Assembly (NCBI GenBank): GCA_965240325.2
Contig: OZ251250.1
Coordinates: 558,001 to 622,000 of the forward strand
Direction of reading: 5' to 3'
Origin: Rebecca billardiae RCC1528
Lineage: Eukaryota; Protista; Haptophyta
Length of the DNA: 64,000 nucleotides
The notes under the pieces are model-generated. The model was given only the letters and a program-made list of their open reading frames with translations, did no database searches and was not told where the DNA came from. The position numbers and the translations under genes are program-made. Below, piece by piece: positions 1,319 to 62,800 of this stretch (positions within the stretch are counted from its first letter, which is position 1; every line of letters starts with the position of its first letter).

Positions 1319-1349
<31 letters not shown>

Positions 1350-2259: not shown

Positions 2260-2295
<36 letters not shown>

Positions 2296-3942: not shown

Positions 3943-3976
<34 letters not shown>

Positions 3977-5320
3977 ATGCGCGGCGGCGGCGTGGCGGAG
4001 TCGGCGGCGGCGACGCCGGCGGCGCTCGCCCCGCTGCTCGAGAGCGCGCGGCTGTGCGAGCTGCGCGCGCTCGCGCGCGAGCTCAACGACGCGAGCGCCA
4101 ACGCCACCGCCGCCGCCGCCCACGCGGGCGGCGGCGCGGGCCGGCTCTCTCCGTGCGGCGGCGGCGGCGGCGGCGTCGCTGTTTCGTCAAAGCCACTCGT
4201 CCCGACGCCCCCGTCGGCGGCTGCGGCGATCATGCCCGCGGACTCGGCGGCACTGACGGAGCTGCGGCCGTTCCTGCCGCCCGAGTGCGCCGCGCTCGCG
4301 CCGTACTGCGTGGACGCCCCGCCGCCCACGCTCTCCGCCGGCGGCGGCGGCGGCGCGGCGCGCGCCGCCGACGGCGGCGGCGGCGGCACGCACGGTGGCG
4401 GGCCGTGCGCGCGCGCCGACCTTGCGGGGCTACGCCGGCTCGCGGCGATGCTGAGTGACGAGACGGGCGTCACGACGTACGAGCTCGTCAGCTCAGGCGT
4501 CGTCGGTGCCCTCGTCCGCTGGCTCGCGCCGCCCGCTGCCGCTGCCGCGGCGGCGGCGGGCGCGGCGGGCGCGGCGGCAGGGCCGCGCGGCGGCGGCGGC
4601 GGCGGCGGCAAGGAGGCGCGCTCGGCCTCTCCGTCCCCGCAGCCGCCCGCAGCCGCCGCCGTGCCGCCGTCGGTGGTGCGCGCACGCCGACTCGAGCTCT
4701 GGGAGTGCCTGCACGCCCCGCCGCCGATCGCCGCGCACGCCGAGCCGGCGGCGGCGGCGGCGCCGGGCGTCGGCGCGCCTTTGGCGCCCGCGCGCCTGCC
4801 GGCTGCGCACGCGCTCGCGGTGCGGTTGCAGGATGCATTGTCCGGTGCGGAGCAGCTGCCGGTGGTTGCGTGCGCGCCCGGCGCGGCCGCCGCGGCCGCC
4901 GCCGGGGACGCGACGGGCCTCGGCGGCGGCGGCGGCGCATACGGCGCCGACGGCGGCGCTGACCAAGCCTCTCTCGCCCTGCGGCTCTTCACACAGCCGA
5001 TTAAATTGCGGATTGTACGCGCCGCGCCCGCCGGCGCCGACGGCGGCGCGGGCTCGGGCTCGGCTGCGGCGCGCGCCGGGCTCGGCGCGGGCTCGGACCT
5101 CCTCCTCGGCGGCGGCGGCGGCGGCGGCGCCGAGCACACCACCACCGCACTCATCGAGCCGCTGGCGTCCGTGCGGGCAATCGCCGACTTTGTTCACCGA
5201 CACCTGCCGCCGCCGCCCGCGGCGGCGGCGCCGCCGGTGCCGGCCGCGCGCGGCGCAGCGTGCGCGAGCGGCGGTGGCGGCGGTGGCGGCAGCGGCGCGG
5301 CGGCTGGCGCGACGCGCAAG

Positions 5321-5358
<38 letters not shown>

Positions 5359-5884
5359 GGCAGGCGGCGGGCGGGTTGCAGGGGGCGGCGGCGAGGGCGG
5401 TGGCGGTGGCAGCGCGCGCGGCGCGCCGCCCGCGGCACCGCCGCCGCCCGCCGCAGGCGGCAGCTCGGGCAAGGCCCCGGCGACGCAGCCACCGCCACCG
5501 CCCTCGCCGCCGCGCACTCGGCGGCAGCAGCGCGCGGCGGCGGCGGCGGCGGCGCGCCCGGCGGCGGGCGGCGGCAGCACCGCGCGCGGCGGCGGCTCTC
5601 GCGCGCGCGCGGCGGCAGCCGGCGCCGCCGGCGGCACCGCGGCGCGCGGCGCGCGCGGCGCGCGCGGCGGCGCGGCGCGCGGTGCCGCCGCACCGTCTGC
5701 GGACGCGCTGGCGGAGGCGGCGAGCGCGGCGGCGCGGCGCGCGCTCGCCGAGGCCGACCCGGACGAAGATGAGTACAGGGACGGTTACGCCGACGGTTAC
5801 GCCGGCGGTTACGCGGACGGCGGCGCGGGCTTCGCCGACGGCCTGCGCCTCGGCCGCGCCGCGGGCGGGCTGCTCGGCAGCGCG

Positions 5885-5930
<46 letters not shown>

Positions 5931-8900
5931 CCGACGACGACGACGATGACGACGACGACAGCGGCCTCCCCCGCTTCCACGATGGCGGCGGCGGCGGCGG
6001 GCGGTACGGGCGCTTCTCTCTCTCGCTCGGCGGCGGCGCCGCCGCCGCCGCGGGCGGCGCCGCCCCCGACGTCCTCGCGGCCGTCTCGCGCCGCGGCCGC
6101 GCGGATGGCGGCGCGTTTGGCGGCGGCGGCGGCGGCGCGCCTTCGGAGCCGCCGGCGCGCGCCGCGCCGCCCGCGGGCGGCGGCGGCGGTGGGCGCGCGG
6201 CGGGCGTCGACGCGTCGGGGGTGCACACGGTCGAGCCTGGCGAGCGCGAGCTCGCGCTCCTCGCGCCGTCGGCCGCGGGCTCGGAGCCGCCGTCCAGCGC
6301 GCCAGCGCCAGCGCCCGGCGGCGGCGCTGGCGGCGGCGGCGGCGGCAACTCTGGTGGCGGCGGCGGCGCGGCGGCCTCGATCGCTCTGGTTCTGAATGGG
6401 CGCACGCTGCCGCATGACCTCTCGATCTTCCGCGCGGTGTGCCTGTACGGCCGCGCCGAGCTGCGCCCGCTGCTGTGCCTCGAGGCCGACTCGGAGGCGG
6501 GCGGCGGCGGCGGCGGCGACGGTGGCGGCGGGAGCGGCGGCGGCGCGGCGGCGGGCGGCGGCGCGGGCGCGGCGGCGCACGCGCCCGCGCCGGCGTATGT
6601 GACTCCCGCCGAGCGCGCGCGCGCGTACACACGGCTGTGGCATGCCACCTACTCTCTTACGTACATGCACGTGAACGCCGCGCCGCCGCCGCCCGCCGGC
6701 GTCGCGCCGTCGCCACCGCCGGCCGCGCCGCCGCCGCCGGCCGGCGGCGGTGGCGGCGGCGGTGGCGGCGGCGGCGGTGGCAGGCGCGCGGGCCGCGGCG
6801 GCGGCGCGGGCGACGCTGGCGCGGCCGCCGGCGCCGACGGCCCCAACGCCGCGGCCGGCGCGGCCGCGGACGAGCTCGGCGGGGCGCTCGCGCAGGTGGG
6901 CGCGCTCGCGGGCACGTGGGGGCTCTCGGCCGAGGCGGCCGAGGCGCTGCAGCTGCTGCAGCTGCTTCAGGCGCTGGAGGTGGAGGGAGGGCGTGCGCGC
7001 GCGCTCGAGGGGCTCGGGCTCGGCGCGGTGGTGGCGAGCGCCGCCGCGGCACCGACGGCGGCGGCGGGCGGCGGCGCGAGCGGCGGCGGCGGCGGCGGCA
7101 CCGGCGGTGAGACGGGCGGCGGCGCGCTGCAGCTGGCCGCCGCCGGCGGCGGCTGCGGCGGCGGCGGCGGCGGCGGCGGCGCGCCTCTCTCGGCCGCAAG
7201 CGCGCGCGGGGCGCTCGCTGCCGCGGCGGCGCGGCCGCTGCCCGCCGCGACGCTTGTGTCTTCGCAGCTCACGGCGAAGCTGTCGCGCGCGCTGCTCGAC
7301 CCGCTCGCACTGTGCGCGCACGCGCTGCCGCAGTGGGCGCGCGTCCTCCCGCGCGCGGCGCCGTTCCTCTTTCCGTTCGAGCTGCGCCGACACAACCTGC
7401 GGTGCACGGCGCTCGGCGCGACGCGAGCGCTCCAGCGCGTGCACGCGGTGCTGAGCGCGGACGACGGCGGCGCGCAGGCGGCGGGCGGCGGCGGCGGCGG
7501 CGCACACGCCGCGCACGGCCGCGCGGACGCCGCCGCCGCCGGCCTCGGCGCGCCGCGCGCCGGACTCGCCGGACTCGACGCGACGAAACTCTCGCGGCTG
7601 CCGCGCGAGAAGGTTCGCGTCTTCCGCGAGAACCTTCTCGCGTCGGCGGCGCGGCTGATGGCGCAGTACGCGCCGTCGCGCGGGATTCTGGAGGTGGAGT
7701 TCGCCGGCGAGGCGGGCACCGGGCTCGGCCCCACGCTTGAGTTCTACTCGCTCGTCAGCCAGGAGCTCCGCTGCGCGGCGGGCGTGTGGCGCGCGGACGG
7801 CGGCGGCGCGGACGGCTTGGACGGCGGCGGGCCGGAGGCGCTGAAGAGAGGCGTGAGCGGCGGCGGCGCGGCGGGCGGCGCGGGCGCGGACGCACACATG
7901 GCCGACGCGCCCGGCGGCGCGGCGTCCGACGGCGCGTCCGCCGCCGCCGCGACCTCGCAGGTCCGCGCCGCCGCGCCGCCGCCCGCCGCGCCGCCGCCGC
8001 CGCCGCCACTGGGGCCCAGGCAGCTTTTCCCGCGCCCGCTCTCGCCGGGGGACGGCGCGGGCGCGGCGCGCGCGCAGCTCGTGTTCACGCTGCTCGGCCG
8101 CTTCGTCGCGAAGGCTGTGCTCGACGACCGGCTGGTCGACCTGCCGCTCACCGCCGCCTTCTATCGAGTGGCGCTGCGCCGCGCCGACGTCGGTGCGCGG
8201 CGGCGGCGCGGCGCGCGCTCGCGCCGCGCGCCGCCGCGCCGCGCGCGCACCGCCGCCGCCAACGCCGCCGCCTCTGCGCGCGCCGCCGCGCCGCGCCGCG
8301 CCGCGACACCGCTCATCCGAGCCCGCAACCCACGCCGCACCCCGCGCGCCCCCGCGCCGCAGGGCTGCGCGACGTCGCCGAGCTCGACCCGCAGCTCGCG
8401 CGCACGCTCGCAAGACTCGCGGCGCTCGGCGCGCGCGCGCGCGCGCTGCTCGCCGCTGGCCTGTCGGCGGAGGCGGTGGAGGCGGGGGTTACGCTGGACG
8501 GCGTGCGCGTGGCGGAGCTCGGCCTCGACTGGACGCTGCCCGGCTTCGCGGACATCGAGCTCTGCGAGGGCGGCGCCGAGCTGGTGCGCGCCTTTGCATT
8601 CGTGTGCAAACGCTCGCGCGTGTGCTCTGCGCCGCGCGCGTGTGCTCTGTCCTGCGTGCGTGTGTGCCATCGCTGCACCGCGGGTGTTGCCGCGTGTGTG
8701 TGCCGTGGCGATGACGACAGCGCATGCACATTCGCTTCGAGCCTTCCAAGGCGCCCCGCCGCCTCTCTCCGGGGCGCGGGGCGCGGTGCGGTCAGCATTG
8801 CGCGGGGTCTCTGAGCCACGCACGCGCGCGGCACCGCGCGGCGGTGTGCGCGGCGTGTGCGTGCGCGGCGTGTGCATGCGCGGCGTGTGCGTGCGCGGCG

Positions 8901-10232
8901 TGTGCGTGCGCGGCGTGTGCGTGCGACCGCGGGTGGGGACCCCGTTGGCGCTGGCTGCTTTGATATTGGTTTTGTTCGGTTTTTTGGGTCGCTTTTCTAT
9001 GATTCTTTTCACCTTGAATTCCGACAGGCTGCTCCCCGCATGCACGCGCGGCGAGGCCCACCCTAGCCGGCCGTTTGCCCGCGACCTGTGCTACACGCCA
9101 CACGCACGACACGCGCACAACACGCACGCGCACGCACACACGCACACGCGCCGCCACAACTCAGCCGCGCACCCGCGCACACCGCTCGCCGCGCGCGCCG
9201 CGCGCCGTGCGCCGCGCGCCGCGCCTCAGTGCGTGGGCGCTCTGCAGCTGGAGAGCTACGTCGCGGCGGTGGTGCGCACGACGCTCATCCACGCCGTCGC
9301 GCTGCCCTTCGCCGCGTTCCGCCAGGGCTTCGAGGAGGTGCGAGCCGCGCCGCGCGCGCCCGCCGCCGCCGGTGGCGCGGTGAAGCAAGCTCACCACACG
9401 GCGCGCGCGCGGAGGGAGGCGCGGCGCGCCGGGCGGGCGCGGCGGCCGCGGCCGCGGCGCGGCGCTCGGCGCACGGCGCCCGCTCAGCACGAGCCCCCCG
9501 CCCGCCGCGCGCGCGCCAACCTCGCAGGTGCTGCCGCTGCACCACCTCCGCGCGTTCAGCGAGGCGGAGCTCGACGTGCTGCTGAATGGACAGCAGGTGC
9601 GCCCACCGCGGCACCCGCGCGCCCACTGCGGCACCCGCGCGCCCACTGCGGCACCCGCGCCCACCGCGGCACTCCTGTCCGCTGCGGCACCCGCCGCCCC
9701 ACCGCCGGCGGCGCCGCGGCCGCGGCGCCGCGGCCGCGCGCGCTCGACGCCTGCGCTCACCGCGCCCCGTGCCCACCTCACCCCGCCCGCGCCGCCACAC
9801 GCGCCCGCGCGCACACTCGCGCGTGCGTGCACACGCGACGCGCGCGCCGACGCGCCGTGCGCGCAGGAGCGGTGGGCGCGCGAGTGCGTGCTCGAGGCGC
9901 TGCGCTTCGACCACGGGTACACGCGCGACTCGCAGGCCGTCGGGTACCTCGTCGAGGTCCTCTGCGAGATGTGCGCCGCCGAGCAGGCGGCTTTCCTCCG
10001 CTTCGTCACCGGCTCGCCGCGGCTTCCGGTCGGAGGGCTCGCGCGGCTCTCCCCGCCGCTCACGATTGTTCAGAAGCGGCCGGAAGGTTCTGAGTCCGCA
10101 GACGCGTATCTGCCGTCGGTGATGACGTGCGCGAACTACCTCAAGCTGCCCGAGTACTCGTCGAAGCAGCTGATGCGCACGCGGCTGCTCACGGCGTGCG
10201 AGGAGGGGCAGGGCAGCTTCCTCCTGTCGTGA
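478..10232 (+). CDS. HECT E3 ubiquitin ligase, UPL3/TRIP12/Ufd4 family (ARM repeats + HECT), about 2660 aa, 6 exons
   Basis: Exons inferred from GT/AG sites with consistent phase: 478-530, 1027-8192, 8363-8583, 9230-9337, 9528-9596, 9867-10232. ARM region 'QLAALTELCDRLAMATED...LLCAEYIDLAEEVL'. HECT motifs 'LEVEFAGEAGTGLGPTLEFY', 'FLRFVTGSPRLPVGG' and catalytic 'LPSVMTCANYLKLPEYSS'. Confidence 0.95.
8851..8925 (+). repeat. Intronic 15-bp tandem repeat (CGGCGTGTGCGTGCG, about 5 copies)
   Basis: Directly visible in HECT intron 3. Confidence 0.85.
9600..9700 (+). repeat. Intronic ~20-bp minisatellite (GCCCACYGCGGCACCCGCGC)
   Basis: About 4 tandem units in HECT intron 5. A related array lies at 61205-61395. 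Confidence 0.8.
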
Positions 10233-10782
10233 CGACCGCCGCGCGATGGCGGACCGATGGTGACGCACACGGCAGTCTGCAAGCTCAGCCGTCAGCGAGT
10301 AGCGACGACGTCAATAACTGTTGGCGCGCGCGGACGCGCGGCGGCGCCGGACGGCGTCACACGGGCCCGGCGGGTGGCGTGTGCGCCGATACTGTATACT
10401 CTGTATGTACTCTGCTGGCGAACGATTGCCATTGTATATATATATACTGTACGACGACGGTGACGATGATGGCGGATACACGACTGCGTCGAACCGTGAC
10501 CGTCTTGCTGACTTGCAGCGCGAGTCTTGCTCTGAAGCCTCAGCGCGAAATAAAAACTATAAAAAGGCGCCGCCCGCCTGGCAGCAAAATAAGCAGCAGA
10601 AGAAATCAAGCCGGCGGGAGCGCGGCCCGCCCGGACTCTCTGCACAAGCTCCTCCAAAGCGCGCCGGTCGAGACGCGTGGCACCCCTTCGCTGCTGCCGC
10701 GCTCATCAGCAGCAGCAGTCCGCCGCGCGCCGACGACGACAGCTCCCCCGACGCGCCGCGCCGCCAGCGTCACGACCGCGCG

Positions 10783-11273
10783 ATGCCGTCGGCGTCGGAG
10801 CTGCAGCGCGGGGCGCCGGGCGAGGGCGAGGCCGACCCCGCCGCCGGCGGCGCGAGCCCGCACCTCGGCCCCTCCGCCACGCGCTCCGAGCGCTCGGAGC
10901 CAGTAGTCGGTTCAGATCGCTATCTCGACCGCGCGTTCGAGTCGCTGCTCGGCGCCGCGCGGCTGGAGGCGTACCTGCCGCAGCTGCGCGCGCAGGGCGT
11001 GGAGTCGCTCGCGGACCTGCTCGTCATCCCCGACGACGAGCTCGCCGAGTTCCTCCGCGCCGAGGTCGGCATGAGCCGCTTCGAGGCGCCTCGACTCGTG
11101 TCAGCCGTGCAGCAGCGGCGCGCGGCCGACGCGGCGGTCGCGGACGTGCGCGCGCACCCGTCGCGCGGCGGCGGCCGCGGGCTGGGGAGCGGGTGGGAGG
11201 TCGTGCCCCGCCACCACCACGACCACCACGCGCAGCCGCCCACCATCCCCATCCACGGCGGCGGCGGCGGCTT

Positions 11274-11309
<36 letters not shown>

Positions 11310-12848
11310 GCCCACGCTTGCGCTGGGCTTCGGCGTGGACGGGCGGCCCGTGCTGCAGCCCGCGCTCGGCGGCGGCGGTGGCGATGGCGCCGGCGGTGGG
11401 TACATGCTCACGCCGTGGGGCCCGCTCGTCGGCCTCGGCGGCGCAGGCTACGCGCCGGGCGCGCAGCCGTATTTGCAGCCGCCGCAGCCGCCGCCGCCGC
11501 CGCCGCCGCCGCCGCGCGCCGAGCCGGAGGTGGAGGCGAGCGAGGAGGAAGGCTGGGCGGGCGGGCGCGCGCGCGGCGGGCGGGGCCGCGCGCCCGGCGC
11601 GGCGCGCGAGCCGCCGCGCAAGCAGCACGCCGCCGACGGCGGCGGCGAGACGTCCGCCGCGGCGATCGCGTGGCGCGTGCTTATTATTACGCTCGGCACA
11701 AATGTCATTATTTTATACTCATGGAGCGTGCGCGACCTGCGCCCGCTCGCGCTGTGGATCGCGCTGCTGCTCGCCGCGCTGCTCTCGGCGGGCGCGGGCG
11801 GCGGCGCCGGCGCCGCCGACGCCTCGCGCGAGCGCAGGCGCGAGCGCGGAGGGCTGCTCGGCGCGCTGCTTGCCCTTGGGGACTCGGTGGCGTGGGCTGT
11901 GCGCACGCTGGCGCGCGCCGCGCTACTGTGCGCGCTGGTGTGGGTGCTGATCGCGGCGGTGCAGCCGCCGCCGCCCGCGCCGCCGGCGCCGCCGCTGCCG
12001 CAGCCGGGCGCGCAGCCGCACCCCGCCGCCGGCGCGGACGCGCCCCAGCCGCCGCCGCCGCCGCCGCCGCCCCCTCCGCCCGCAGGGCGCTCGCTAGCCG
12101 AGCAGCTGGCGAATTTCGAGTTTCGCGAGCTTGACCTCGACGCGTGGCTGGGGCTGGGCTCGGCGGGGGGCGCGCCGAGCGCGGCGGCGGCCGGCGGGGC
12201 CGGCGCGGACGGCGGCGGTGGCGGGGAGCGCGCGGCAGCCGCGGGCGGCGCCGCCGACACGCCGCCGGGGCCCGCCGCCGACGCGGCCGCCGACGCGGGC
12301 GGTGGCGCGTGCGCCGCGGATGCGGCGTCGGGCGCGTGCGAGGCCGAGGCGGCCGCCGAGCCGTGGTCCGACGCGCAGCGGCGCGCGGCAGCGAGCGCGC
12401 TCGAGGCCGGCGCGGCGCGCAAGGACGCCGGCGTCGCGCTGTACACCGCCGGCGACTTTGGCGGAGCGTTTGACGAATTCGGCGCGGCACTCGACGCTCT
12501 CGCGGCTGCGGTGCCGCCGAGCGCGCCGGAGGGCGCGGTGGCGCGCACCCCGGCGCAGGCGGCGGTGCCGCCGGACACGGCCGCGGCGGCGCGCGCGCTG
12601 CGCCTGGCCCTCCACCTCAACGCGGCGCGCGCCGCCCTCTCCGCCGACTCGCCCCTCGACGCCGTGGCCTCGGCGACGAAAGCGCTTCGACTGGAGCCGG
12701 GCTCGCAGAAGGGCCTGTACCGGCGCGCGCAGGCGCACACGGCGCTCGGCCAGCGCGAGATTGCAATCTCCGACCTCGAGGCGCTACTGGGCCGCTACCC
12801 GGATAACGGCCCGGCGGAGGCGCTGCTCGCGCAGCTGCGGATCGACGG

Positions 12849-12880
<32 letters not shown>

Positions 12881-15800
12881 GCGGCGGTGACGGTGGCGAC
12901 GGTGGCGGTGGCGGCGGCGGCGGGCGGAGGGGCGCAGCGGGCGAGGCGGCGGGCGCGCAGCCGACGGGTGCGCCGTCCTCCTCCGCCGCGTCGCCCGCCG
13001 CCGACGCCGCCGCCGACGCCGCCGCCGCGCTGCTGGCGGAGGCCGACGGCCTCAAGGCGCGAGGCAACGGCGAGATACAATCTGGCGAGCCGACGGCGGC
13101 GGCGCAGACATACGCGCGCGCGCTGCAGCTTGTCGCCCAGGCCGAGGCGGCGGTAGGCGCCGGCCCCGCCTCCGCGAGCGGTGAGCCTGCCGCCGAGCCG
13201 CCGGCCGCCGCCGCCGCGCCCACCGTCGCCGCCGCGCGCGAGCTGCGGCTGGCCCTCCACCTGAACCGCGCGGCTGCGGCACTTTCTGCGAACCTTCCGG
13301 CGGAGGCGGTCGCGGCGGCGACGGAGGCGCTCCGCCTCGAGCCCACCGCGCAGAAGGGCTTGTACCGGCGCGCGCAGGCGCATGCGGCGCTCGGCCAGCG
13401 CGAGATTGCAATCTCCGACCTCGAGGCGCTACTGGGCCGCTACCCGGACAACGGCCCGGCGGAGGCGCTGCTCGCGCAGCTTCGGATTGAAGCGCACGCG
13501 GAGATGCAAGCCACGGCGCAGCGGGCGAGATTGCAATCTCCGCCCATCGCCACGGCGCAGCGGGCGAGCGCCGCCGCGGCGGAGGCGCCGCCGAGGCCGG
13601 CGCCGAAGCCCGCGGACGCGATGGGCGCGGACGCGCGCGCGCCGCGCGAGCGTGCGCCGCAGGGGGCGGTGATGGCCGCCGCGGGCGGCGGCGGCGGCGG
13701 CGGCTTTAGCGCCGGGCTCGCGGCGGCGGCGGCCGGCGGCGCGGCGGGAGCGAGCGTGCCCGGAGCAGCGGCGGGAGGGGCGCTCGCTGCCGGCGGCGCC
13801 GCGGCCGCGGGGTCAGCGGCGGCCGCGGCCGCCGCCGCCACGCAGCCGGCGGCTGCGGCCGCCGCGTCGGCCGCGCGCGACGGTGCGGGCGCGCCGCGCC
13901 CAGATGCGGACACGCTGGCCGAGCGCGCGGCGGAGGCGAAGGCGGTAAGCAGCTGTGGCCGCGCCGCGCGCCGCGCGCGCGCGGGGGCTGCGCCGCGCCG
14001 CGCGCGCACGCGCGCGGGCGTTGCTCACTCGCGCCCGTGCCCGCCCCGCCGCGCGCCGCGCCGCGCGCGCATCGGCGCCCGCCCGCCACGCCGCGCCGCG
14101 CCCCTCCGCCGGGGTCTGGTAGGCAGCCACGGCAGCCTTCAGGCGCGGGGCGCACGGAGCAGCCCTCGAGCGCTACGCGGCCGCCGCCTCGCTCGTAAGC
14201 GAGGCGGCGGACGCGCGCGCCGCCGACGGCGACAAGCAGGCTGCCCTGGCTCTCCGCGCGCAGGTGCGTGCGCCCGAGCGGGCGCGCCTTCGCGCGCCTT
14301 TTCGCGCGGCGCGCACGCCTGCGCACGCCTGCGCGACGGCGCGCGCCGGCCTGTGCTGCTCCGCCGTTGTCGTTTGCCTCGTGCTCTGCGGTCGCGCCGT
14401 TCACGCGCGCGCGCCGGCGCTACCTCTGAGCCACCCCTCGCCACCGCCCCACGCCCACGCCCCGCGCCCAACCCCAACCCTAACCCCAACCCTAACCCGC
14501 GCCGCCGCAGCTCGGGGCCCTCCACACCAACGCCGCCACGTGCGCGCTCGCCACCAAGGCGCACGCCGAGGCGGCGCGCCACGCGGACGAGGCGCTGCGG
14601 GCGGAGCCTGGGAGCGCAAAGGCGCTGCTGCGCAGGGCGCACGGTACGCGCGACACACCGCGCACGCGCGCGCGCGCGCCGTGCCGCGCACGCGCACGCG
14701 CCGCCCATACCCACCGCTACGCCTCACGCGCCCGCCCGCGCCGCCGCCGCCGCGTTGCGCCCGCCGCAGCGCGCACCGGACTCGGCGAGCTGTCCGGGGC
14801 GCGGGCGGACCTGGAGGCGATCCTCGCGGCGGAGCCGGGGCACGCGCAGGCGACAAAGCAGCTGCAGGCCGTCACGGCGCTGCAGCGAAAGAAGGCGGCG
14901 GCGGAGGAGGCGGGCGCGGAGGCGGCCGAGCCGTCGGCCGCGGCAGACGCGGAGGCGGGTGCCGCGGCGCCCGATGCGGCGGCGGCGGCGGCCCGCGAGG
15001 CTTCCGACGCGCGCGGCAGCGGCGCAGGCGCGGGGCCTAGCACTCCCCCGGCCGCCGCGCTCGTCGCGCCGCCGAGCAGCGACGGCGCCGCCGCGGCCGA
15101 CGCCGCGGCCGCGCACAGCCAAGCCGCGCGCCGCATGGCGCTGGCCGCGCCGGCCACCCCGGCCGAGGCGGCCGCGGCCGTGATGGCGGAGGAGGGCGAG
15201 AGCGTCGACGCTGCGCCCTTGCCGCGCGCGGGCACGCCGCGCGCGTCGGCCGCCGCCACCGCGGCTGAGTCCGCCACGGCACCCGCCGCACCCGCCGCAC
15301 CCACCACCCAGCCAGCTTCCGCCGACGCGGCGGGCGCCGCAGCAGCCGCGGACGCGGACGCGGCTGCACGCCGCGCCGCTGCGAGCCCACCACCGCCGCT
15401 GCCCGCCGTGCCGGCGGGCCCGCAGGGCGCCACGGCCCTCAAGCAGCACGGTGCGCCAGCCGCGCGCCGCCACATCCGTCCGGCCCGCGCCGCCCCACAA
15501 CCACGCGCACGGCGTGCCCCGCCGCCCGCGCGCCGCGCCGCCGCCGCGCGCCGCGCCGCCGCCGCTCACCCGTGCCAATCCCTGCGCGCGCTCCACCCCC
15601 TCGGCTGCCGCGCATGCCGGCCGCTTCGACCGCCGTCCGGAATGGACTCTTCTGGAACGGCGGGCGCCGCAGGTAACCAACTGTACGCGGCCGGCGACTT
15701 TGCCGGCGCCCTCGCCGCGTTCGAGGGCGCGCTCGGCGCGCTCGGCGACGATGCGGCGGCGGCGGCGGCGGCGGCGGGCGGCGGCGGCGCGCCGCCACAC

Positions 15801-17534
15801 GACCCCGCCATCGCCCTCGCCACTTCGCTGCACCTCAACGCCGCCGCGGCGCACCTCGCGCTGCGCGCGCCGAGCGCGGCCGAGGCGGCGTGCGACCGCG
15901 CGCTCGAGCTCAGCCCGCGCTCGGCCAAGGCCCTCGTCCGGCGCTCGCACGCGCGCGCGGCGCTCGGCGACAGCGCGGGCGCGCGCTCGGACGCGGAGGC
16001 GGCGCTGGCGGTCGAGCCGAGCTCCGGCGCGGCGAGGGCGGCGCTCGACGCGGTGACGGGCGGAGGAGGCGGTGGGCGTGGCGACGGCGCCGGCAGCGCT
16101 GGCGCCGGCGCCGGCGCCGACGCCGCTGCCACCGGCGGCACCGCCGCGCCGCGCGCTGCGGCCGACGCCGGCGCGACGCCCGCAGGCGCGGCGCCGCCGG
16201 CGGCATCGACGCTCCGCGCGCGCATGGCGCCCACGCCCGACGTGGCCGGCACGCGCTTCGCGCGGCGGCAGCCGGGCGAGGATGGCGGCGAGGATGGCGG
16301 CGACGCCGCCTCTGTTCAGTCGGAGGCGGCGGCCGCCGCCGCCGAGCCGGCGGCCGGCCCCGAGGGCGATGGCGGCAGCGCGGCTGGCTCGCTGCTCGAG
16401 CCGGCGCTCAGCTCATCCGCCGAGGCGGCGGCGGAGGCGGAGGCCGACGCCGTAATGGCGGCCGCCGCCGCCGCCGCCGCGGACGAGGGCGGCGCGGAGG
16501 GGATGGCGGCGGTGGCGGCCGAGGCGGAGGCGGCAGCCGCGCTCGCGGCCATGACGGCCGCCGCTGCCGCGCAGCAGCAGGGCTCGGGGCAGGCGGAGGC
16601 GACGGCGGCAGCAATGGACGCCGCGCGCCGCGCCGCTGAGGACGCGCCTGCGGTCGCGTCCGCGGCGGTGGCGGCGCCGCCGTCCGCCGCCTCCGCTGCC
16701 GATCCGATGCGTGTCGCCGCGGACCCGCGCGGCGGCGGCGCTGCCGCCGCGGAGGCCGGCGTCAACGAGTCGTCAGCAGCAGCGGGGGTTTCCGTCGCCG
16801 CCGCCGCCGCCACGGCCGCCGGCTCTGCAGAGCGGGCTGCAGCACTGCGCATGCTGGCTGGCACCGAGGCAGGCGGCGCCGACGCGGCCGGTGCCGCAGG
16901 CGCGGCGGAGGGCACGGCCGCCGGCTCGGCTGAGCGGCCTGCGCCCGCCCTGGCGACCGAGGCAGGTGGCGCCGACGCGGCCCCTGCTGGCGCAGCAGCC
17001 GCAGCTAAGGGCGAGGGCAGTGCGGCGCGTGCCGACGGCGCCCGGCGCGGCGCGGCGGCGACGGCCGGCCCACCGGCGGCGGGCTCGAGCGGCTCGGACG
17101 CTGCTGAGCCGGCGGCGGCGGCGGCGGGCGGTGGTGACGGCAGGAGCGCGGCGGTGGAGCGCGCGGCCGCCGCCGCCGACGCCAACGCGACGGCGAGGCC
17201 GTCCCAGACAGCTGCCAACGCGACTGCCGGTGCCGCGGACGGCGGCGGGCGCGGCGGCGACGAGGAGCTGGCCGAGGGCACGCCCACGCCAAGCCCTGCC
17301 CTACCCTACCCTACCACCACCCCGCCCGCTGGGCCGGCCGGAGCGACGAGGCCGGCAGGCACGCCCGGCCGCGCCGCGGCCGCGTCGGTGGGCGATTCGG
17401 CACCGACCGGGGCCGACTCGGCGCGGCGGCGGCGCAGCGGCGCGGCAGGCGGGCCCGACGCGCGCCGCGGCACGCCGACGCCGGCCGGTGCTGCAAGTGG
17501 AGACGACAGCGAGGGCGCGACGACTGCTGGCTGA
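10783..17534 (+). CDS. SAM-like domain + transmembrane helices + four TPR modules (co-chaperone-type TPR protein), about 1990 aa, 5 exons
   Basis: Exons 10783-13944, 14123-14263, 14511-14643, 14770-15450, 15673-17534 keep frame. TPR signatures 'KDAGVALY...LHLNAARAAL...KGLYRRAQAH' and 'KARGN...LHLNRAAAAL', plus two more. SAM-like 'LEAYLPQLRAQGVESLADLLVIPDDEL...VGMSRFEAPRL'. Hydrophobic stretches at about 11660-11960. Confidence 0.85.
14470..14498 (+). repeat. Interstitial telomere-like (CCCTAA/CCCCAA)n in an intron
   Basis: AACCCCAACCCTAACCCCAACCCTAACCC. Confidence 0.7.
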
Positions 17535-17719
17535 TGAGCTGCATGGTAGCCGACTGCTCGTCACTGATGCTATATACATCATCACTCGTCGCGGGTAGTC
17601 AGACCGATGCGAGCCTGCTGCTGACTAGTGCACGCCCAACGCCCCTGTCATCAGCGCTGCGCCTGCGTATGTGCGAGCCGGCCACCGCGCCGCGCCGCCC
17701 TGGCCCTGCGCGGCCGCGC

Positions 17720-17855
17720 GCTTCTTGCGCAGCGCCGCCGGCAGGCACACCTTGCGCAGATCATGCAGCGCCGAGGTCTGCATGAACGAGTCCAGCCCCT
17801 CGAGCACGCGCATGTGGCACAGCCCCACCTCGCGGATCATCTCGAGCTTGGCGTC
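17720..17855 (-). pseudogene. Orphan terminal exon resembling the C-terminus of a replication factor C small subunit (RFC2/Rfc4 type)
   Basis: After an intron-like GCGCAG acceptor: DAKLEMIREVGLCHMRVLEGLDSFMQ, compared with RFC2 '[25 protein letters not shown]'. No upstream RFC exons are present in the window. Confidence 0.65.
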
Positions 17856-18001
17856 CTGCGCGCGGGCGGGCGGGCGGGCGCGCGCGGTGCCGGGCGGCGG
17901 CGGCGCGGACGTGAGCGTCCGGCGGCGGCAGGCTGGCGCACAGGACAACGCGTACGCGCACTATGCAGCGCCCGCCACCCACCTCCAGGCGACACGGGTG
18001 C

Positions 18002-48257: not shown

Positions 48258-48767
48258 ATGACCCTGGCCACCGCGCGGCTCGCGAAGGAGCGGCAGAGCT
48301 GGCGCAAAGAAGTCAACCCGCCGAAAGGATTCGTCGCGAAGCCCACTACGCGCGCCGACGGCTCGGCCGACCTGCTCCGCTGGGAGTGCCTCGTGCCGGG
48401 CAAAGAGGGAACCATCTGGGAGGGCGGCGAGTACCCGGTCACTCTGCAGTTCTGCTCGGACTATCCGACCAAGCCGCCGGTGTGCTCGTTCAAGCCCGGC
48501 TTCTTGCACCCCAACGTCCACACGGACGGCAAGATCTGCCTGGATATCATCAACGACAGGGCGAACGGCGGCAGGTGGAACCCGGGCACCACGATTAAGA
48601 TGATTCTGATCGGCATCCAGGAGCTGTTGGACAGGCCTAACATCAACTCGGCCGCGCAGCAGCGAGCGTACGAGCTGTACAAGCGAGACCACACGGCTTA
48701 CGAGAGAGAGGTCCGGGCGCAGGCGAAGCGACACGCGCCAGTCGAGCTGATTGACCTTACGCTCTGA
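48258..48767 (+). CDS. UBC9: SUMO-conjugating enzyme Ubc9-like (divergent, intronless), 169 aa
   Basis: RLAKERQSWRK, WECLVPGKEGTIWEGG, HPNV...ICL (catalytic Cys), TIKMILIGIQELL, YEREVRAQAK. Confidence 0.9.
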   Translation: MTLATARLAKERQSWRKEVNPPKGFVAKPTTRADGSADLLRWECLVPGKEGTIWEGGEYPVTLQFCSDYPTKPPVCSFKPGFLHPNVHTDGKICLDIINDRANGGRWNPGTTIKMILIGIQELLDRPNINSAAQQRAYELYKRDHTAYEREVRAQAKRHAPVELIDLTL

Positions 48768-49474: not shown

Positions 49475-51824
49475 TCACATGATGGCACACTTGCTCTCCG
49501 GCACACCGTCAGCGCCGAGCTCGCCCACAGGGCCCGTGGGCGGCTCCGCCTCGCCGACCGCGTTGGCCTCGGCGCCGACGCGGCCGATCTCCGTGCCCGA
49601 GGGGGCGTACAGCACCGCCTCGTCGCCGGCGTCGTTCCACATGTAACTGTGGCGGTTACGGTGTCGGTTACGGCGGGGCGAGCGGGTGCGAAGGTCAGGG
49701 CGAGCATGGCGGCTACGGGGCGTGCGCCGGTGTGCGCCCGCGCCCGCGCCGCCCGCACGGCGCGGGCAGGCACGCAGGCGCAGGGCGTGCGGCGCGCGCG
49801 CGCGCGCGCAGGCGGGCGCAGTCACGCCGCGCGGGTCCCGCGCGCGCACGCACCGCGGCGACCACCAGAGCTCGGTGAGCGGGTCTCGCTTCTTGCGCTG
49901 GTTCTTTTTGCCCGACCAGACCGTAACTGCCATCCCTGGCTGCAGCACAAAGTCCGGTGGGAAGTCGAACTGCAGGTCGTCGGAGTGGACGGACTTGACC
50001 TGTGCGCGTGGCGGGCACGCCGGCGCGCGCGAGGACAACGGCGCGCGTGAGCGCACGCGGGGCGGCGGCGCGCGCGCATGCCGCCGTGTGCGGCGGCGGC
50101 GGCGGCGCACAGCGCTGTGCGGCGCGGCGCACCGAGAAGCCCCCGAGCGGCGCGGGCGCGTCGCCGGCGTTCTTGAGCGAGAAGCAGTCGTTCGGCAGGT
50201 CGAGAGTGGCGAGGTAAGGCCGTGGGCCGAGGGCGGCGCTGCCGCCCGCGCCACCCGCCGAGCCGGCGCCGCCACCCAACGTGACGCGCCGTCGCTTCGG
50301 CTCCTTGGTGGGCGTGATGCCAAGCCGCTCCTCCTCGCCCTCGAGCAGCTTCGTGTACGTCTTCAGCTCCTCCGACAGCGAGATCTTCACGTCCATCAGC
50401 TCGTTGAACTCGACCTCCTTCTGCTGGCGCGCGGCGCGCGCCTCTGCGCGCGGGAAAAAAGCAAAAATAAGCCATATAAGAAAAGAACAGTCAGTAGAGG
50501 CGCGCGGGGGCGGCGAGTGAGCGCGCGCGTGCAGCGCCAGCGGCGGGTGCGCGGGCTCCGCGCGGCCGTGTAGGCCGTGGCGCCACCACCTGCCCGGCGG
50601 CCGACCGGCCGGTCGGCACGGCGCCGCCACGCTCGCGCCGGGGCCCAACTGCTGCACGGCGCGCGCGACAGGACAAGACAAGGGCGCGGCGCGGCGCGGC
50701 GCGGCGCGGCGAGCGGACAGCAGCGCGCGGCGCGCGCACCCTGCAGCTGCTGATCGAGGCGCGCGATGGCGGCCTCGAAGTGGGCGACGCGGTCGCCGAG
50801 CTTCTTCTCCAGCTCGGTGGCCTTCGCCTCCGCCGCCGACGTGCGCGCGCGCAGCTCGCGCATCTGCTCCGTGAGCTCGGTCGCGCGCGCGCCCGCGCCC
50901 TGACGCGCGGCCTTCTCCTCCTCGACCGACCGAAGCAGTTCCGCTTCGACGGCGTTGAAGTGGGCCTGGAGCGCGTCGAGCTCGGCCTGGCGCTCCTCCT
51001 CGGCGCGCTTCTTCTGCTTCTCCATCGCCTCCTGCAGCTGCTTGTCGTAGCTCGCCTTCAGCCGGTCCACCTCCGAGCGCGAGCCACCGGACAGCTCGGC
51101 GATCTGCGCGCGATACGTTTCAGACTCTTTGCGCCGGAGCTCCTCGGCGGTGGCGAGCTGGTCGCGCAGCGGCGCGAGCTTCTTCTCGAGCAGCGCGGCC
51201 TTGGACTCGGAGACCTGCATCGCCTTCTGCAGCTCCGCCACGCGCTCCTCCGCCTCGCGCGCGCGCCCGCCCAGCCGGTCGCGCTCGTCCGTCACGGTGC
51301 GCAGCTTGATCTCGAGATCGTCTGCGAGCGCCGCCTTCTTCGACGCGGCGTTGCGCTCCTTGACGGCGTCATTGGCCTGCGTGGTCAGCGCGCCGACCTT
51401 GCCCTTGAGCTCGGTGATCAGCTCCACGTCCTTCTCCGCCGTCTTGCGCATCTCCGCCAGCTGCTTCTCGTAGAGGTTCCGCATGGAATCGGACTGCGCC
51501 TTGTGCGTCGACGCGGCCACGTCCACGCGCGACTGGAGCTCCTCGTTGGTGGCCTCGAGCTCCTTCATGCGCGAGAGGAAGTACTGCAGCCGCGCGTTCA
51601 GGTTGTGCAGCGTGTCGCGCTCCTCCACGCGCGACAGCCGCGTCGCCGAGTCGCTGCCCACTGCGCGGCGGAGACGAGCGCGCCGAGCCGGGCCGCACCG
51701 CGCCGCGCGCGCGACACGCGCGGTGAGACAGGCGGCGGGCGAGGCCGCGCGCGCGGCGGTGCGGACGCATCGGCACGGCGCGCGCCACGAGCGCGCGCGC
51801 ACTCGATGAACGCCGCTCCGTCAT
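49475..51824 (-). CDS. Nuclear lamin (B-type architecture), 523 aa, 5 exons
   Basis: Exons 51824-51803, 51660-50740, 50443-50133, 49999-49854, 49646-49475 (1572 nt). Coil 1A 'SRVEERDTLHNLNARLQYFLSRMKELEATNEEL', rod end 'LMDVKISLSEELKTYTKLLEGEEERL', NLS 'PKRRR', Ig tail 'FDFPPDFVLQPGMAVTVWSG...WNDAGDEAVLY', CaaX 'CAIM*'. Confidence 0.95.
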
Positions 51825-57730: not shown

Positions 57731-59422
57731 TCAGCGGTAGTTGGTGGTCGGTACAAGACCGGCGTAGCGCGCTGCCGGGTGGCGCTGCGCGTCCTGCGGC
57801 AGGCTGCCGCCCACGACGCCGGCGACGCCGCCGACCACGCCCGTGCCCACCGCCCCGCCCGCCGCAGCCTGGGACTTGCCACCGTTCTGGCTCGCCGCCA
57901 GCTGCTGCGCACGCTGGCCGCCGCCGCCGCCACTCGGCGCGACGACGACGGTACCCGCCGCGGCCGCGCTCGCCGCCGCCGCCGCCGAGAGCTCGGCGCG
58001 CGCCGCAAGCCGCTCGCGCGACTGCAGGGCCACGCGGAGCTGCTTCGCGCGCAGCGCCTCGGCGCGGACGGCGTCCCTGTACCCCGAGCGCTCGTCCTCC
58101 AGCTGCGGGCGCGAGGCGGCGGAGGCGCGCGCACGGCGCGCGCGAGTGTTCGCGCGCCACGCGGGCGCGGGTAAAGCGGGTAAATCGGGGAGCGGCGCGG
58201 CGTACGGGGCGGGGCGTGCGCAAAGCCCCGCGTGCTCGCACGGAAGGCGCCCCCGCCCGCCCTGCGCCACTGGCACGGAGCGCGTGCCCTCAGCCCCCCC
58301 TAGCCCGAACCACCGCCACCGCAAGCCGGCGCGCGCGCGCGCATGCGTGCGTGCATGCGCGCGCCGCGCGTGTGCATGCGCGCGCGCGGGCGCGCGGGCA
58401 TGCGCGCGCGGGTGCGCGTGCGCACGCGCATGGCGGGGCGCGTTGGCGCGCGGGCGCACCTTTCGAATGTGCTCGGCGGTCTTGTGCGAGGCGAGCTCGG
58501 CGAGCACCTCCGCCTCGATCTTGGCGCGCTGCTCCAGCTGCCAGCGCGACACCGCCTGCGCAGGCCACGGCGCCTGCGCACGCGCGCGGCCGGCGCGCAG
58601 CGGCGCGCGGCGCGGAGCGCGCGGCGCGGAGCAAGGGTGTGCAAGTGAGCGCGCGCGCGCGCGCGCGGGCGCCGTGCGTGCGTGGTCCGCGGGGCGCGGC
58701 GTGGCGTGGCGGAGGCAGGGCGAGGCCGGGCGCCCTGCCGGCGGCACGCACGCGGGGTGCGCCGCCCGACCGAGCGCCGCGCGCGCACGCACACGCCCGC
58801 ACACACGCGCGCACACACGCGCGCACACACGCGCGCACACACGCGCACACACGCGCGCACACACGCGCACCCACACGCCCGCACACACGCGCACCCACAC
58901 GCCCGCACACACGCGCACACACGCGCGCACACACGCGCGCGAGAGCGCGGGCGCACGCGCCGCGCACGCGCCACCGCGCCGCGCGACCGCGCGCACATGT
59001 GAGTGGCCGCCCGAGCGCCAGGCCGCCACCTCCTCCCGGAGCTCGGCGACCGTCAGCGCCTCCAGGCCCGCGCCCGGCCCCGCCGCCGCCCCGCCGCCGC
59101 CAACGCCGCCGCCAGCGCCCTCAGCGGCGGCCGCAGCCGCGATCGCCGCCGCGGCCGCGCCGCGCGGCGGTGTGTCGGCGCGCGGCGTGAGCGTCCCCCG
59201 CGGCGTCTGGACGAGCGCGCCGCCGGCGTCGCCGCGCGGCGTGGGCACGAGGTCCGCCGCCGCGCGCACGTCCGCGTGCTGCTGCCGCTGCGCCAAGTTC
59301 CCCGGGAGCTGCGGCCGCGCGAGCGGCGCCGACGGCGGGCGCGCGCCGCGCGGTGTTGTTGCCCGTGACCCTCGGGGCACGTCGGCGCCGCGCGGCGTCG
59401 CGCCGCCGCCGCCGCCGCCGCT

Positions 59423-59455
<33 letters not shown>

Positions 59456-59801
59456 GACCCCGCCGCGCGGCGTCGCGCCACCGGCGCTGCCGCCCGCGCG
59501 CGGCGTCGCGCCGCCGCCGCCGCCGCCTCGCGGCGTGGCGCCGCCGCCGCCGCGCGGCGTGGCGCCGCCGCCGCCGCTGCCGCCGAGTGCGCCGCCGTGC
59601 GCTGGCCAGCCTGCGAAACTTCCGGAAAGTTCCGAGCCGCCGCCCGGCCTGAGCGCGCAGCTGGCCTGGCTCGGCGCGCGGCCGATCGGCGCAGCGCCCT
59701 CCAGCGGCAGCGGCAGCAGCTCGGCCAGCTGCGCCTGCGTCAGCCGCGCGCTGGGCGGCAGCGGCGGCTGCGCGCGCGCGCCGTGCCGCGCGCCCGGCGG
59801 C

Positions 59802-59850
<49 letters not shown>

Positions 59851-62800
59851 GCTCTGCGGCGGCGGCGCCCCCGACCCCGCTGCCGCCGCCGGCGACGGCG
59901 CCGAGCGTGAGCCCGAGCGCCGCCGAGCCCTCCTCCGCCACGCGGCCGTGCGCGCGCAGCACCTCGCGCAGCGCCGGCAGCGCGCTCAGCTCGAGCGGCG
60001 GCGCGCGCATGTGCGCGGGCACCAGCACTCTGTAACGGTCCGAATTTACCCGTATGGGTAATTCGCCGCGCTCGACGCCCTCGAGCGACGCGCAGAGGCG
60101 GAGGAGCGCGTTGAAGAGGACGGCGAGGTCGTGCGCGGACGCGCCGTCGCGCGCGCTCGCCGCACCCTCCGCCGCCTCCGCGCGCGCCGCCGCCTCGCGC
60201 GCCGCGCCCTCCGCCGCGTCCGCGCGCGCTGTCGCCTCCGCTTGCGCGCGGCGCAATTGCGCGCTATGCTCGGCGCGCAGCGTTGCGAGCTCGCGCGCGT
60301 GCGCGTCGGCCGCGCGCTGCGTCGCGCGGCGCACGGCCGCGTCGGTCTCGTGCGCGCCCTCCGCCGTGGCGCGCAGCGCGTGCGGCACCGCGTTCACGAT
60401 CGCCGCCTGCTCGGCGAGCAGCGACTGCGAGCGCGCCGCCACGCTCGCAACCTCTCGAGCGCGCGCGCGCGCGTCGGCGCGCAGTCCTTCGGCCTCCCGG
60501 CGCGCGGCGGCCGCGTCGTCCAGAGCCTGCTTGAGGCGCTCGCGCTCGCGGGCGAGCTCGGCGCGCAGCTTGGCCTCGCGCTCGGCGGCGGCGGCGAGCT
60601 GTGCGTACGACCCCTCGTCCACGCCGCCGCCCGCGCCGCCGCCCGCGCCGCCGTGGCCGCCGGCCGCCGCGGCCGCCGCAGCCAACAAAGGGTGTTGTGT
60701 GCCGGAGGCGCCGGGGCGGGAGGCGCCGCCGCCGACACCGCCGCCGGCGGCGGCAGCGCTGGCTGTGTTGTGTGCACCGAGCAGCGCCGCCATCATGCCC
60801 ACGCCGCCGCCGCCCGGCGCGCCCTCGCCACCGCCGCCCATCCCACCAACCCCGCGCCCCGGCGCACCCGCGGCCTCGCCCGCCGCGGCCGCCGCACCTG
60901 CCAACACAGCGCGAACCTCTGGCGGCAGCGCGCCGTCCGCGCCGCCGCCCGCCGCGCCGCCTCCCAGCAGGGCTTTGAGCTGCTCCGCGTGCGCGGCGGA
61001 GACGTTGGCGAGCTCGAGCTTGAGCGAGGCGACCTCCTGCTGGAGCGCGTGGATCCTCGCGAGCTGCGGGTTCATAGCCTCGCCGCTCGACAGCGTCGGC
61101 TTGTTCATCACCTGTGGCGGCGCGCGGCGCGGCAACACCCGGGCCAACGGCGGCGGCGGCGCGGCGTGAGCGGCGGCGGCGGCGCGGGAGCGGCGCGCGA
61201 GCCGCCCACTGCGGCGCCGCGCCCACTGCGACGACGCCGCGCCCACCGCGGCGGCACCCGCCCACGCCCGCCCGCCGGCGCGCGCGCCGGCACGCCCACC
61301 GCGGCACCCGCCCACCGTGACGCCGCGCCCACCGCGGCAACCGCCTGCGCGCCCACTGCAGCACCCGTCCGCGCGCCCACTGCGGCACCGCCCGCGCGCC
61401 CGCGCGCGCACACCTGCAGACAGCGCGAGGCGAAGAGCAGCGTGTTGGTCGACTCGTCGTGCGCGTCGTGCGCGGGGTTGATCGTCGCGAGGAGCGTGGT
61501 GAACGAGTTCCCGCCGAGCGACTCCTGCAGCATCCGCGTGAGCTTCGAATCTCGGAACGGAATGTGCATGCCGCCGGGCCGGTTAGCGCCCGCGCCTGCA
61601 GACGCGCTGTTCAGAGCCATGACCACAGAACCGAGCGCCGAGAGAGAGCGATTGATGGTGAGCGCCTCCTTGAGGCGCTGCCCCTCCGAGCCGGACTTGT
61701 TGAGCCGCTCCGAGCCCGCCAGGTCCACCAGGTGCAGCTTCCCCGCGATCGTCTTCCCCGTCTCCGCGTTCGTCTGCACGAGCTGCAAAGTAAACACAGT
61801 ATGCGAGCGCGACGAAACTTCGTTCAATAGCGTCTCGTGCGTCGCGCGCAGCGCGGAGCACGCGGAGATGACGGCCATCACCTCCTCGATCGAGGAGACC
61901 TCGATGTGCTCGAGCTTGTCCACGAACACCCGCCCGTCCGCCGCCTCCCGGATCTCCGTCCGGATGTTCTTCCGCAGGTCCTCCACCGTGAGGTCGTGGC
62001 GCGCGCGCTCGCGCTCGCTCCAGCCCGCGCGCGCGCGGCCGTGCAGAGGCGCGTACTCAGCCGAGCCGCCGAGGAGGGCGGAGGCGCCGCCGGCGCCGCG
62101 CTGCGGCGGGTGGGAGGAGGCGGAGGAGGACTCGGCGACGATCGAGCCGCTCGTCGCGCGGCGCGCGAGCTGCACCGCCCGCGCCACGTCGGCGAGCTTG
62201 CCGCGGCCGCCCGCGCCGCCGCCGCCCGCGCCGCCCGCGCCGCCGTCGAGCGTCGTGCGCGCCTGCTGCACCGCGCGCCCGAGGTCGTACAGCTGGTCGA
62301 GGTAGTTCTCGACGAAGGAGACGAAGACGCTCGCGCGCACGTTCGAGCCCACCAGCCGCTTCCGCCGCTCCACCTCGGCGAACATGAACTCGAGCGCGCG
62401 CGGCACGATCCCGCGGTCCGCGCCGCCCTCGCCGAAAATCGAAAACGTTTTTCCCGAGCCGGTCTGCCCGTAGGCAAAGCAGCACGAGTTGAAGCCCTTG
62501 ACGACGTGCGCGCAGAGCGGGCGGCAGACCGAGCTGAAGATGTGCTCCTGCGCGGCGGCGGGAGCCGACGCGCCGCGCCGCGCGCCGCGTGAGCGCACGC
62601 GAGCGGCGGCCGGGCACGCGCGGATGCGCGCGCGCGGCGCAGCGCCGCGCCGCGCCGCCTCGGCCATGCGCGCGCACCTGCGTCGTCTCGGGCATGAAGA
62701 CGTCGTCGAAGCTGAACTCGCGCTCGGGCTTCGTCTCCTCCTGCCCCTTCGGCGGCCGCACGTGCAGCGTGCCCGGGTCAGACGGGAACGTGGTGTACAG

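Follow-up and report, generated by a model that had tools for sequence, protein, structure and literature searches.

A divergent Ubc9-class SUMO E2 of the haptophyte Rebecca billardiae with a predicted SUMO-interacting motif at its extreme C-terminus

SUMO conjugation is usually pictured as the work of one invariant SUMO E2, with specificity and chain building contributed by a handful of E3s, largely via SUMO-interacting motifs (SIMs) that place SUMO on Ubc9. A gene of the haptophyte Rebecca billardiae RCC1528 raises the question of whether such a motif may also be built into the E2 itself. The gene lies at positions 48258..48767 (+ strand, stop codon included) of the window, that is, the whole 64,000-nucleotide stretch of contig OZ251250.1 considered here, and it encodes a protein of 169 residues, referred to as P0001. 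A first-pass annotation had described this product as a divergent Ubc9 with a C-terminal SIM and remodelled binding surfaces, and had gone on to propose a neofunctionalised E2 paralogue that is recruited to already SUMOylated targets, for chain extension or for a different modifier.

The open reading frame runs uninterrupted and without introns from ATG to TGA, and the sequence strings on which this description relied are all present in the product: RKEVNPPKGF at residues 16-25, HPNVHTDGKICLDII at residues 84-98, and AQAKRHAP followed by VELIDLTL. P0001 is a Ubc9-class SUMO E2. It matches one full-length Pfam UQ_con domain (PF00179; 133 bits, profile positions 1-138 of 140), and the best 28 distinct sequences in a HMMER comparison with solved structures are all Ubc9/SCE1 (163-176 bits, E-values of about 1e-50, the best being 4e-51). 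The top non-Ubc9 E2 reaches 101 bits, a gap of about 75 bits from Ubc9 chains at 174-176 bits. A scan of NCBIfam, a library aimed at prokaryotes, gave no match. The AF2 model of P0001, built on a 72-sequence alignment, has a mean pLDDT of 95 and a pTM of 0.88 (a 4-sequence alignment gave a poor model, pLDDT 66), and contains a helix at residues 3-17, a loop at 18-25 that holds an insertion described below, a strand at 26-31 and the last helix at 145-158. In a Foldseek search of the PDB with this model, ranks 1-41 are all Ubc9/SCE1 (TM 0.9-0.98, rmsd ~1.1 Å), followed by Rad6-type E2s, and in a maximum-likelihood tree the protein falls within Ubc9. With Ubc9/UBE2I/SCE1, the single SUMO E2 of animals, fungi and plants, P0001 has 47-51% identity and the UBC fold in common, together with the HPN motif, the catalytic Cys, the β1-β2 hairpin, the R13/R17/K18 corner and A129/Q130.

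As first described, a lamin-like gene on the minus strand, at 49475..51824, is the convergent neighbour of the E2 gene (Pfam Filament 41 bits; LTD 25.5 bits, which is below the curated cut-off), with the two stop codons about 700 bp apart. Because the Filament and LTD domains are split over open reading frames of three reading frames, this neighbour has introns, and the E2 gene has none. The base composition of the window is uneven: positions 1-18000 and 58000-60000 are extremely GC-rich (0.80-0.84, counted in 2-kb windows) compared with 0.56-0.70 around 20-34 kb, and long spurious open reading frames occur in all six frames of this GC-rich DNA.

The nearest relatives of P0001 in a database of 5.8 billion clusters are P0002, from Logan contigs (70% identity), and P0003, an MMETSP transcript (66%). 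P0002, which is 70% identical to P0001 at the protein and 75% at the DNA level, is canonical at the key sites (RKDHPHGF and HPNVYDDGKICLSII). Its gene is intronless and is found at L001:1009-1506 and L002:1006-1503, on Logan contigs of ERR14847148 and ERR14847151; the called open reading frame has a 34-residue N-terminal extension, probably an ORF-calling artefact. The contigs encoding P0001 come from ERR14847151 and ERR14847149, and align collinearly with 4.5 kb of the window at 99.96-100% identity, a stretch that takes in intergenic DNA as well as part of the lamin-like gene. Since they retain intergenic DNA and the introns of that gene, the ERR runs look like genomic DNA. The GC3 values of P0001 (0.88), P0002 (0.92) and the lamin rod open reading frame of the window (0.90) match well. 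P0002 is a more canonical Ubc9 in the same run as P0001, ERR14847151, and, judged by the shared samples from which its genomic placement derives, it is probably a second copy in the same genome as P0001. When a neighbouring open reading frame of L003 was looked up to link P0002 with the genome of the window, only the same contig was returned; for P0003 no contig is recorded, and inspection of L001 by eye for the recurrent 24-bp motif of the window revealed nothing obvious.

The two genes appear to have evolved at different rates. In the maximum-likelihood tree, P0001 (branch length 0.53) stands next to a pair formed by P0002 (0.058) and P0003 (0.29) on a shared stem of 0.12, with supports of 90/69 and 99/84. 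Measured from the common node, the path to P0001 is 0.53, compared with 0.18 to P0002 (about 3-fold) and 0.41 to P0003 (1.3-fold); with a median terminal branch of 0.29 in the tree, the P0001 branch is no outlier. Nei-Gojobori estimates for P0001 and P0002 are dN 0.21 and dS 0.54, giving a dN/dS of about 0.4, which is high for Ubc9. Together with the GC3 of 0.88, this ratio indicates that P0001 is coding and constrained and no pseudogene. A pseudogene reading was rejected, as the open reading frame and catalytic residues are intact, codon bias is strong and dN/dS is below 1.

How far the binding surfaces have been remodelled was assessed by counting residue frequencies over 125 collected Ubc9 relatives, at columns corresponding to functionally defined residues of human Ubc9 (human numbering). 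In the active-site segment HPNVHTDGKICLDIIN (residues 84-99; 48507..48554, + strand), the catalytic Cys94 of P0001 is encoded at nucleotides 48537-48539, and the HPN motif is H84-P85-N86 with Asn86 retained. P0001 keeps the invariant columns N85, C93 (125/125), G90, A129 and R13, as well as Q130 (present in 117 of the 125 relatives), R17 (123) and K18 (117). All five residues used for recognition of the ψ-K-x-E consensus site (Y87, S89, T91, K74 and D127) differ from the human ones, and the loss of the Tyr87, Ser89 and Thr91 equivalents had been singled out in the first-pass annotation. Most of these differences are natural variants: D127S occurs in 51/125 relatives, T91K in 37/125, S89D in 17/125 and K74V in 15/125. 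D127S, T91K and S89D, being common in Ubc9s or sub-family-wide, were rejected as signs of neofunctionalisation, and K74V gives no sign of it either. Tyr87 is another matter, with Tyr in 116/125 relatives and His in only 2/125, P0001 included. Elsewhere in the set, His at this position is confined to P0006, an SCE1-like protein of Cuscuta campestris (HPNIHTSG), so Y87H arose at least twice in Ubc9-like proteins. At the adjacent position 88, P88D is found in 16/125 relatives and the Thr of P0001 in 3/125; P88T, like S89D and T91K, is of the type seen in the sub-family.

The second gene-specific change lies in the α1-β1 loop (EVNPPKGF, residues 18-25; 48309..48332, + strand), placed as a loop by the AF2 model and unique among the 125 relatives. 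The HMMER alignment with human Ubc9 puts a 2-residue insertion here (RKD--HPFGF); the loop also has D19E and has lost the equivalent of H20, which is present in 118/125 relatives. The replacement of the canonical RKDHPFGF by RKEVNPPKGF was therefore correctly noted, and among the 125 it is found only in P0001. K14Q and D19E occur once each, in P0001, and its F22K falls outside the six commonest residues at that column. This loop surface is the binding site for backside SUMO, the E1 UFD and E3s. SUMO in the backside position contacts Ubc9 through its Asp68, which reaches R13 and R17, and its Glu90, which reaches H20 and the backbone of Gly23 (PMC8636563); the R17/K18 corner is named in PMC12687455. 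Read against these contacts, half of the backside SUMO interface is apparently retained in P0001 and the other half rebuilt.

P0001 also departs from canonical Ubc9 in the loop before helix 2 (NDRANGGRW; 48552..48578, + strand), which is 3 residues longer than in human Ubc9. This is a sub-family feature: in alignments, the 'GG' insertion is common to P0001, P0002-P0004 and P0014-P0016. Of the surfaces said to be remodelled, the α1-β1 loop and Tyr87 thus remain as gene-specific, whereas the longer loop and the S89D, T91K, K74V and D127S substitutions recur in relatives or are widespread among Ubc9s. Over the near-invariant columns (at least 90% one residue; n=52), P0001 breaks 5, compared with a median of 1 and a 90th percentile of 3, which places it joint third among the 125, in a ranking headed by a sequence whose N-terminus is garbled. 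For P0002 the count is 1. The changes in P0001 concentrate on the backside loop and Y87, and change at functional sites has been asymmetric and accelerated on its side (path 0.53 vs 0.18; 5 vs 1 broken columns). What survives of the proposed neofunctionalised paralogue is that P0001 is among the most divergent Ubc9s (5/52) and has a canonical counterpart in the same samples; four of the five consensus-site substitutions lend the proposal nothing.

The most distinctive feature of the protein is its C-terminal tail, VELIDLTL (residues 162-169; 48741..48764, + strand, with the stop codon at 48765-48767). The alignment with human Ubc9 stops at the ...AP of P0001, leaving the last eight residues without a counterpart; canonical Ubc9s extend 0-3 residues past the core. 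L164-I165-D166-L167-T168 fits the type-b SIM consensus [PILVM][ILVM]DLT, as the first-pass annotation had recognised, and overlaps a ψ-x-ψ-ψ core, VELI. Compared with the PIAS1 SIM VEVIDLTI, six of eight residues are identical and the other two conservative. The PIAS1 motif is given as K-V-E-V-I-D-L-T-I by a mutagenesis primer and a 'VIDLT to AADLT' entry in PMC4907222, and the PIASx peptide KVDVIDLTIE serves as a SIM competitor (PMC3526273). In the AF2 model, the tail is a coil after helix 145-158, with a mean pLDDT of 75 over residues 161-169 compared with 93-98 in the core, and the linker between core and motif is essentially nil, consisting of Ala-Pro. Modelled on the amino-acid composition of the 125 relatives or of P0001 itself, a random 8-mer carries the type-b pattern with p = 3.6e-5 to 7.9e-5; for a match to any one of the three standard SIM patterns the figure is about 2e-4. 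A chance match seems unlikely even across several hundred independent Ubc9 lineages, though the origin of the finding in a very large scan leaves it some room. By sequence, P0001 is a true Ubc9, intact though unusually divergent, that ends in a textbook type-b SIM sequence.

The SIM is not conserved in the nearest relatives. P0002 ends in ...FAPTDLTL, a partial match lacking the ψ-ψ core, and P0003 in ...FAPTDGDC, with no SIM. Among known sequences the complete PIAS-type tail occurs in P0001 only, and no orthologue closer than 70% identity was found among 5.8 billion clustered proteins, so that conservation, by which short motifs are usually judged, lends it no support. The refuting observation named in the first-pass annotation, a tail absent from relatives, is half borne out: the ending xDL..TL recurs in P0002, and the SIM core is absent from both. 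At the DNA level, the tail reads GTC GAG CTG ATT GAC CTT ACG CTC TGA in P0001 and ACC GAT CTC --- --- --- ACC CTC TGA in P0002. The two tails have Leu, Thr and Leu in common, with synonymous differences at two of the three codons, and this retention of residues despite codon changes points to translation of, and constraint on, the tail in both genes. A five-residue tail starting with T-D is found in P0002 and P0003, and the shorter tail of P0017 (T-D-V) has the same start. Because of this common start, the full SIM looks derived in P0001, and looks like the product of a three-codon gain and a T-to-V change in a short tail. In other lineages, Ubc9 tails vary freely, from 0 to 31 residues, many without SIM character.

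SIM-like tails are also found on the Ubc9 of unrelated green algae. Ten of the 125 relatives have a tail matching a SIM pattern, namely P0001 and nine members of a single clade with support of 100/99. By source name, its members are Micromonas pusilla, M. polaris and Mantoniella antarctica, plus many marine contigs (Mamiellales); the nine proteins are P0019, P0021, P0025, P0026, P0043, P0046, P0059, P0063 and P0072, with cluster members P0132-P0177. All nine proteins, and some 45 additional cluster members, close with the tetrapeptide V-I/V-x-L/V (VILL, VIML, VIVL, VICL or VVIL); an acidic stretch of two or three residues usually comes just before it, reduced to a single one in P0043. Upstream of these residues lies a Gly/Ala-rich linker of 16-23 residues that varies in length and sequence, in contrast to the Ala-Pro of P0001, and a constant end after a variable linker is what a functional short linear motif usually looks like. 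A Ubc9 cluster of Tetraselmis striata (P0027/P0126) ends in SDDDEIVL. The Mamiellales and Tetraselmis ends have the appearance of a conserved C-terminal SIM carried by a SUMO E2, placed, like that of P0001, at the extreme C-terminus. They differ from it in class, as an acidic run followed by V-I-x-L is SIMr-like and of the opposite type, and in the proteins that bear them, which have the canonical RKDHPHGF and Tyr87. As the motif class differs and the tree keeps the clades apart, the origins are independent of the P0001 tail. We found no literature description of a SIM on Ubc9 itself, green-algal tails included. The green-algal parallel raises the prior for selection favouring a C-terminal SIM on a SUMO E2, and is no proof for the haptophyte tail.

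The reading we favour, tentatively and at close to an even chance, is that P0001 is a functional SUMO E2, the divergent member of a pair, with a PIAS-type SIM tail that contacts SUMO in cis. P0002, the slower-evolving canonical copy, would most likely carry out housekeeping SUMO conjugation. P0001 keeps the catalytic apparatus (the HPN Asn, Cys94 and A129/Q130) and the basic R13/R17/K18 corner for the SUMO E1 UFD and backside SUMO, has rebuilt the α1-β1 loop and exchanged Tyr87 for His, and would have gained its SIM, directly behind the last helix, from an ancestral short tail (xTDLTL). The flexible tail may insert as a β-strand into the β2/α1 groove of SUMO, thereby supplying a second non-covalent SUMO contact that is cis-encoded on the E2. 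Either the tail could clamp backside SUMO, as the terminal SIM2 of Nse2 does in trans, and might thereby make up for the rebuilt H20 loop, or it could tether P0001 to a SUMOylated protein or chain. In both cases, P0001 would favour chain elongation and substrates already primed with SUMO, with less need for a consensus site or an E3-supplied SIM, and the change at Tyr87 would likewise make it less reliant on consensus-site recognition. In PMC12687455, backside SUMO binding is described as dispensable for mono-SUMOylation and needed for chain elongation; it may also bring Ubc9 to sites that already carry SUMO, and serves many E3s as an anchor.

Several known systems invite comparison. The SIMs of PIAS proteins (KVEVIDLTI in PIAS1, KVDVIDLTIE in PIASx) and the P0001 tail have V-E-(L/V)-I-D-L-T-(L/I) in common and lie in a disordered segment; the PIAS motif sits inside an E3, with a Ser/acidic stretch behind it, whereas that of P0001 is the extreme C-terminus of an E2, followed only by the carboxylate. 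In Nse2, backside SUMO is held on Ubc9 by a SIM made of the last four residues, whose deletion lowers kcat/KM 4-fold (PMC8636563). The C-terminal SIM2 of Nse2 (see also ZNF451 and the SIM-like elements of Siz/PIAS) resembles P0001 in that the SIM is made from the last residues, and the proposed role, holding a second SUMO on the E2 so as to stimulate discharge or the growth of chains, is the same; the Nse2 motif acts in trans from an E3 bound to Ubc9, and that of P0001 would act in cis. An E2 with a modifier-binding module of its own is known from the ubiquitin system, where UBE2K/Ubc1 consists of an E2 core and a C-terminal UBA domain that binds the modifier non-covalently and is associated with chain building. 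That module is a folded domain, whereas P0001, in the SUMO system, would rely on a linear motif of 8 residues.

Against the favoured reading stands a plainer one, somewhat unlikely in our view, in which the tail is neutral, sits on an ordinary or relaxed duplicate Ubc9, matches a SIM by accident and does nothing new with SUMO. The absence of the full motif from P0002 and P0003 fits this account, as do the many lineages in which Ubc9 tails vary in length and sequence without SIM character, and a dN/dS of about 0.4 accommodates relaxed constraint as well as adaptation; picking the finding from a very large scan also calls for some look-elsewhere discount. It has to contend with a type-b chance of 4-8e-5 per 8-mer and six-of-eight identity with a proven SIM, that of PIAS1, with an intact reading frame, intact catalytic residues and strong codon bias, with the residues kept through synonymous changes in P0002, and with the SIM-like C-terminal ends that other algal Ubc9s evolved and conserved. 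The tail might instead be a different short linear motif that governs localisation or partner choice. A Rev-like leucine-rich nuclear export signal (NES) is defined as LxxLxL, EAR-like repression motifs as LxLxL or DLxL, and class II PDZ ligands as φ-x-φ-COOH. LIDLTL fits the first of these, and DLTL-stop, common with P0002, the last. All three patterns are far less specific than an 8-residue match to a PIAS SIM, on a SUMO enzyme the function of a SIM is readily understood, and the green-algal tails (DDDVILL and the like) are SIM-like and resemble neither NES nor EAR, which makes this alternative improbable.

The two remaining alternatives concern the gene as a whole. P0001 and P0002 could come from two organisms or strains in the culture, P0001 then being the sole Ubc9 orthologue of a fast lineage. 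Their link is one of sample co-occurrence, P0002 being found also in ERR14847148 and P0001 in ERR14847149, so that joint presence in every run is not demonstrable, and the tree places P0001 outside P0002 and P0003, as expected of a more distant species. We nevertheless consider two organisms unlikely: both genes are present in ERR14847151, their GC3 values of 0.88 and 0.92 bracket the 0.90 of another gene in the window, dS is only 0.54, the rare xDL..TL-stop ending is common to both, and the look-up went by exact product and was non-exhaustive, so absence from a run means little. This question touches the paralogue part only and leaves the SIM reading unaffected. The first-pass suggestion of a different modifier fares worst, a switch of P0001 to another ubiquitin-like protein being very improbable. 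It could draw on the changes at K14, H20, Y87, S89 and T91, but every sequence and fold comparison places P0001 in Ubc9, with all top matches there and about 75 bits above ubiquitin E2s; R13, R17 and K18 are retained, and most of the changed residues are shared with otherwise canonical members of the sub-family. The modifier specificity of E2s is imposed mainly by the E1-E2 interaction, according to a review (PMC12687455).

We return to the reading of P0001 as a SUMO E2 with a cis-acting SIM and to what it would mean. A SUMO E2 that brings a SUMO-binding hook of its own may be a design that recurs and has yet to be described. More speculatively, the built-in SIM could possibly be a real and convergent design of marine algae, seen in P0001, the Mamiellales and Tetraselmis, in which E2/E3 hybrids would hold backside or substrate-borne SUMO in cis, and would build chains or modify SUMO-primed targets without an E3-supplied SIM. 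If true, a natural E2 with its own SIM would mean that E3 function is movable onto the E2, and would offer a minimal natural system for dissecting the positioning of backside and donor SUMO. It would also hint at the organisation of SUMO chain formation where recognisable SUMO E3s are few, as in tiny-genome picoalgae, and, if canonical and SIM-bearing copies do coexist in the haptophyte, they would provide an example of sub-specialised SUMO E2s.
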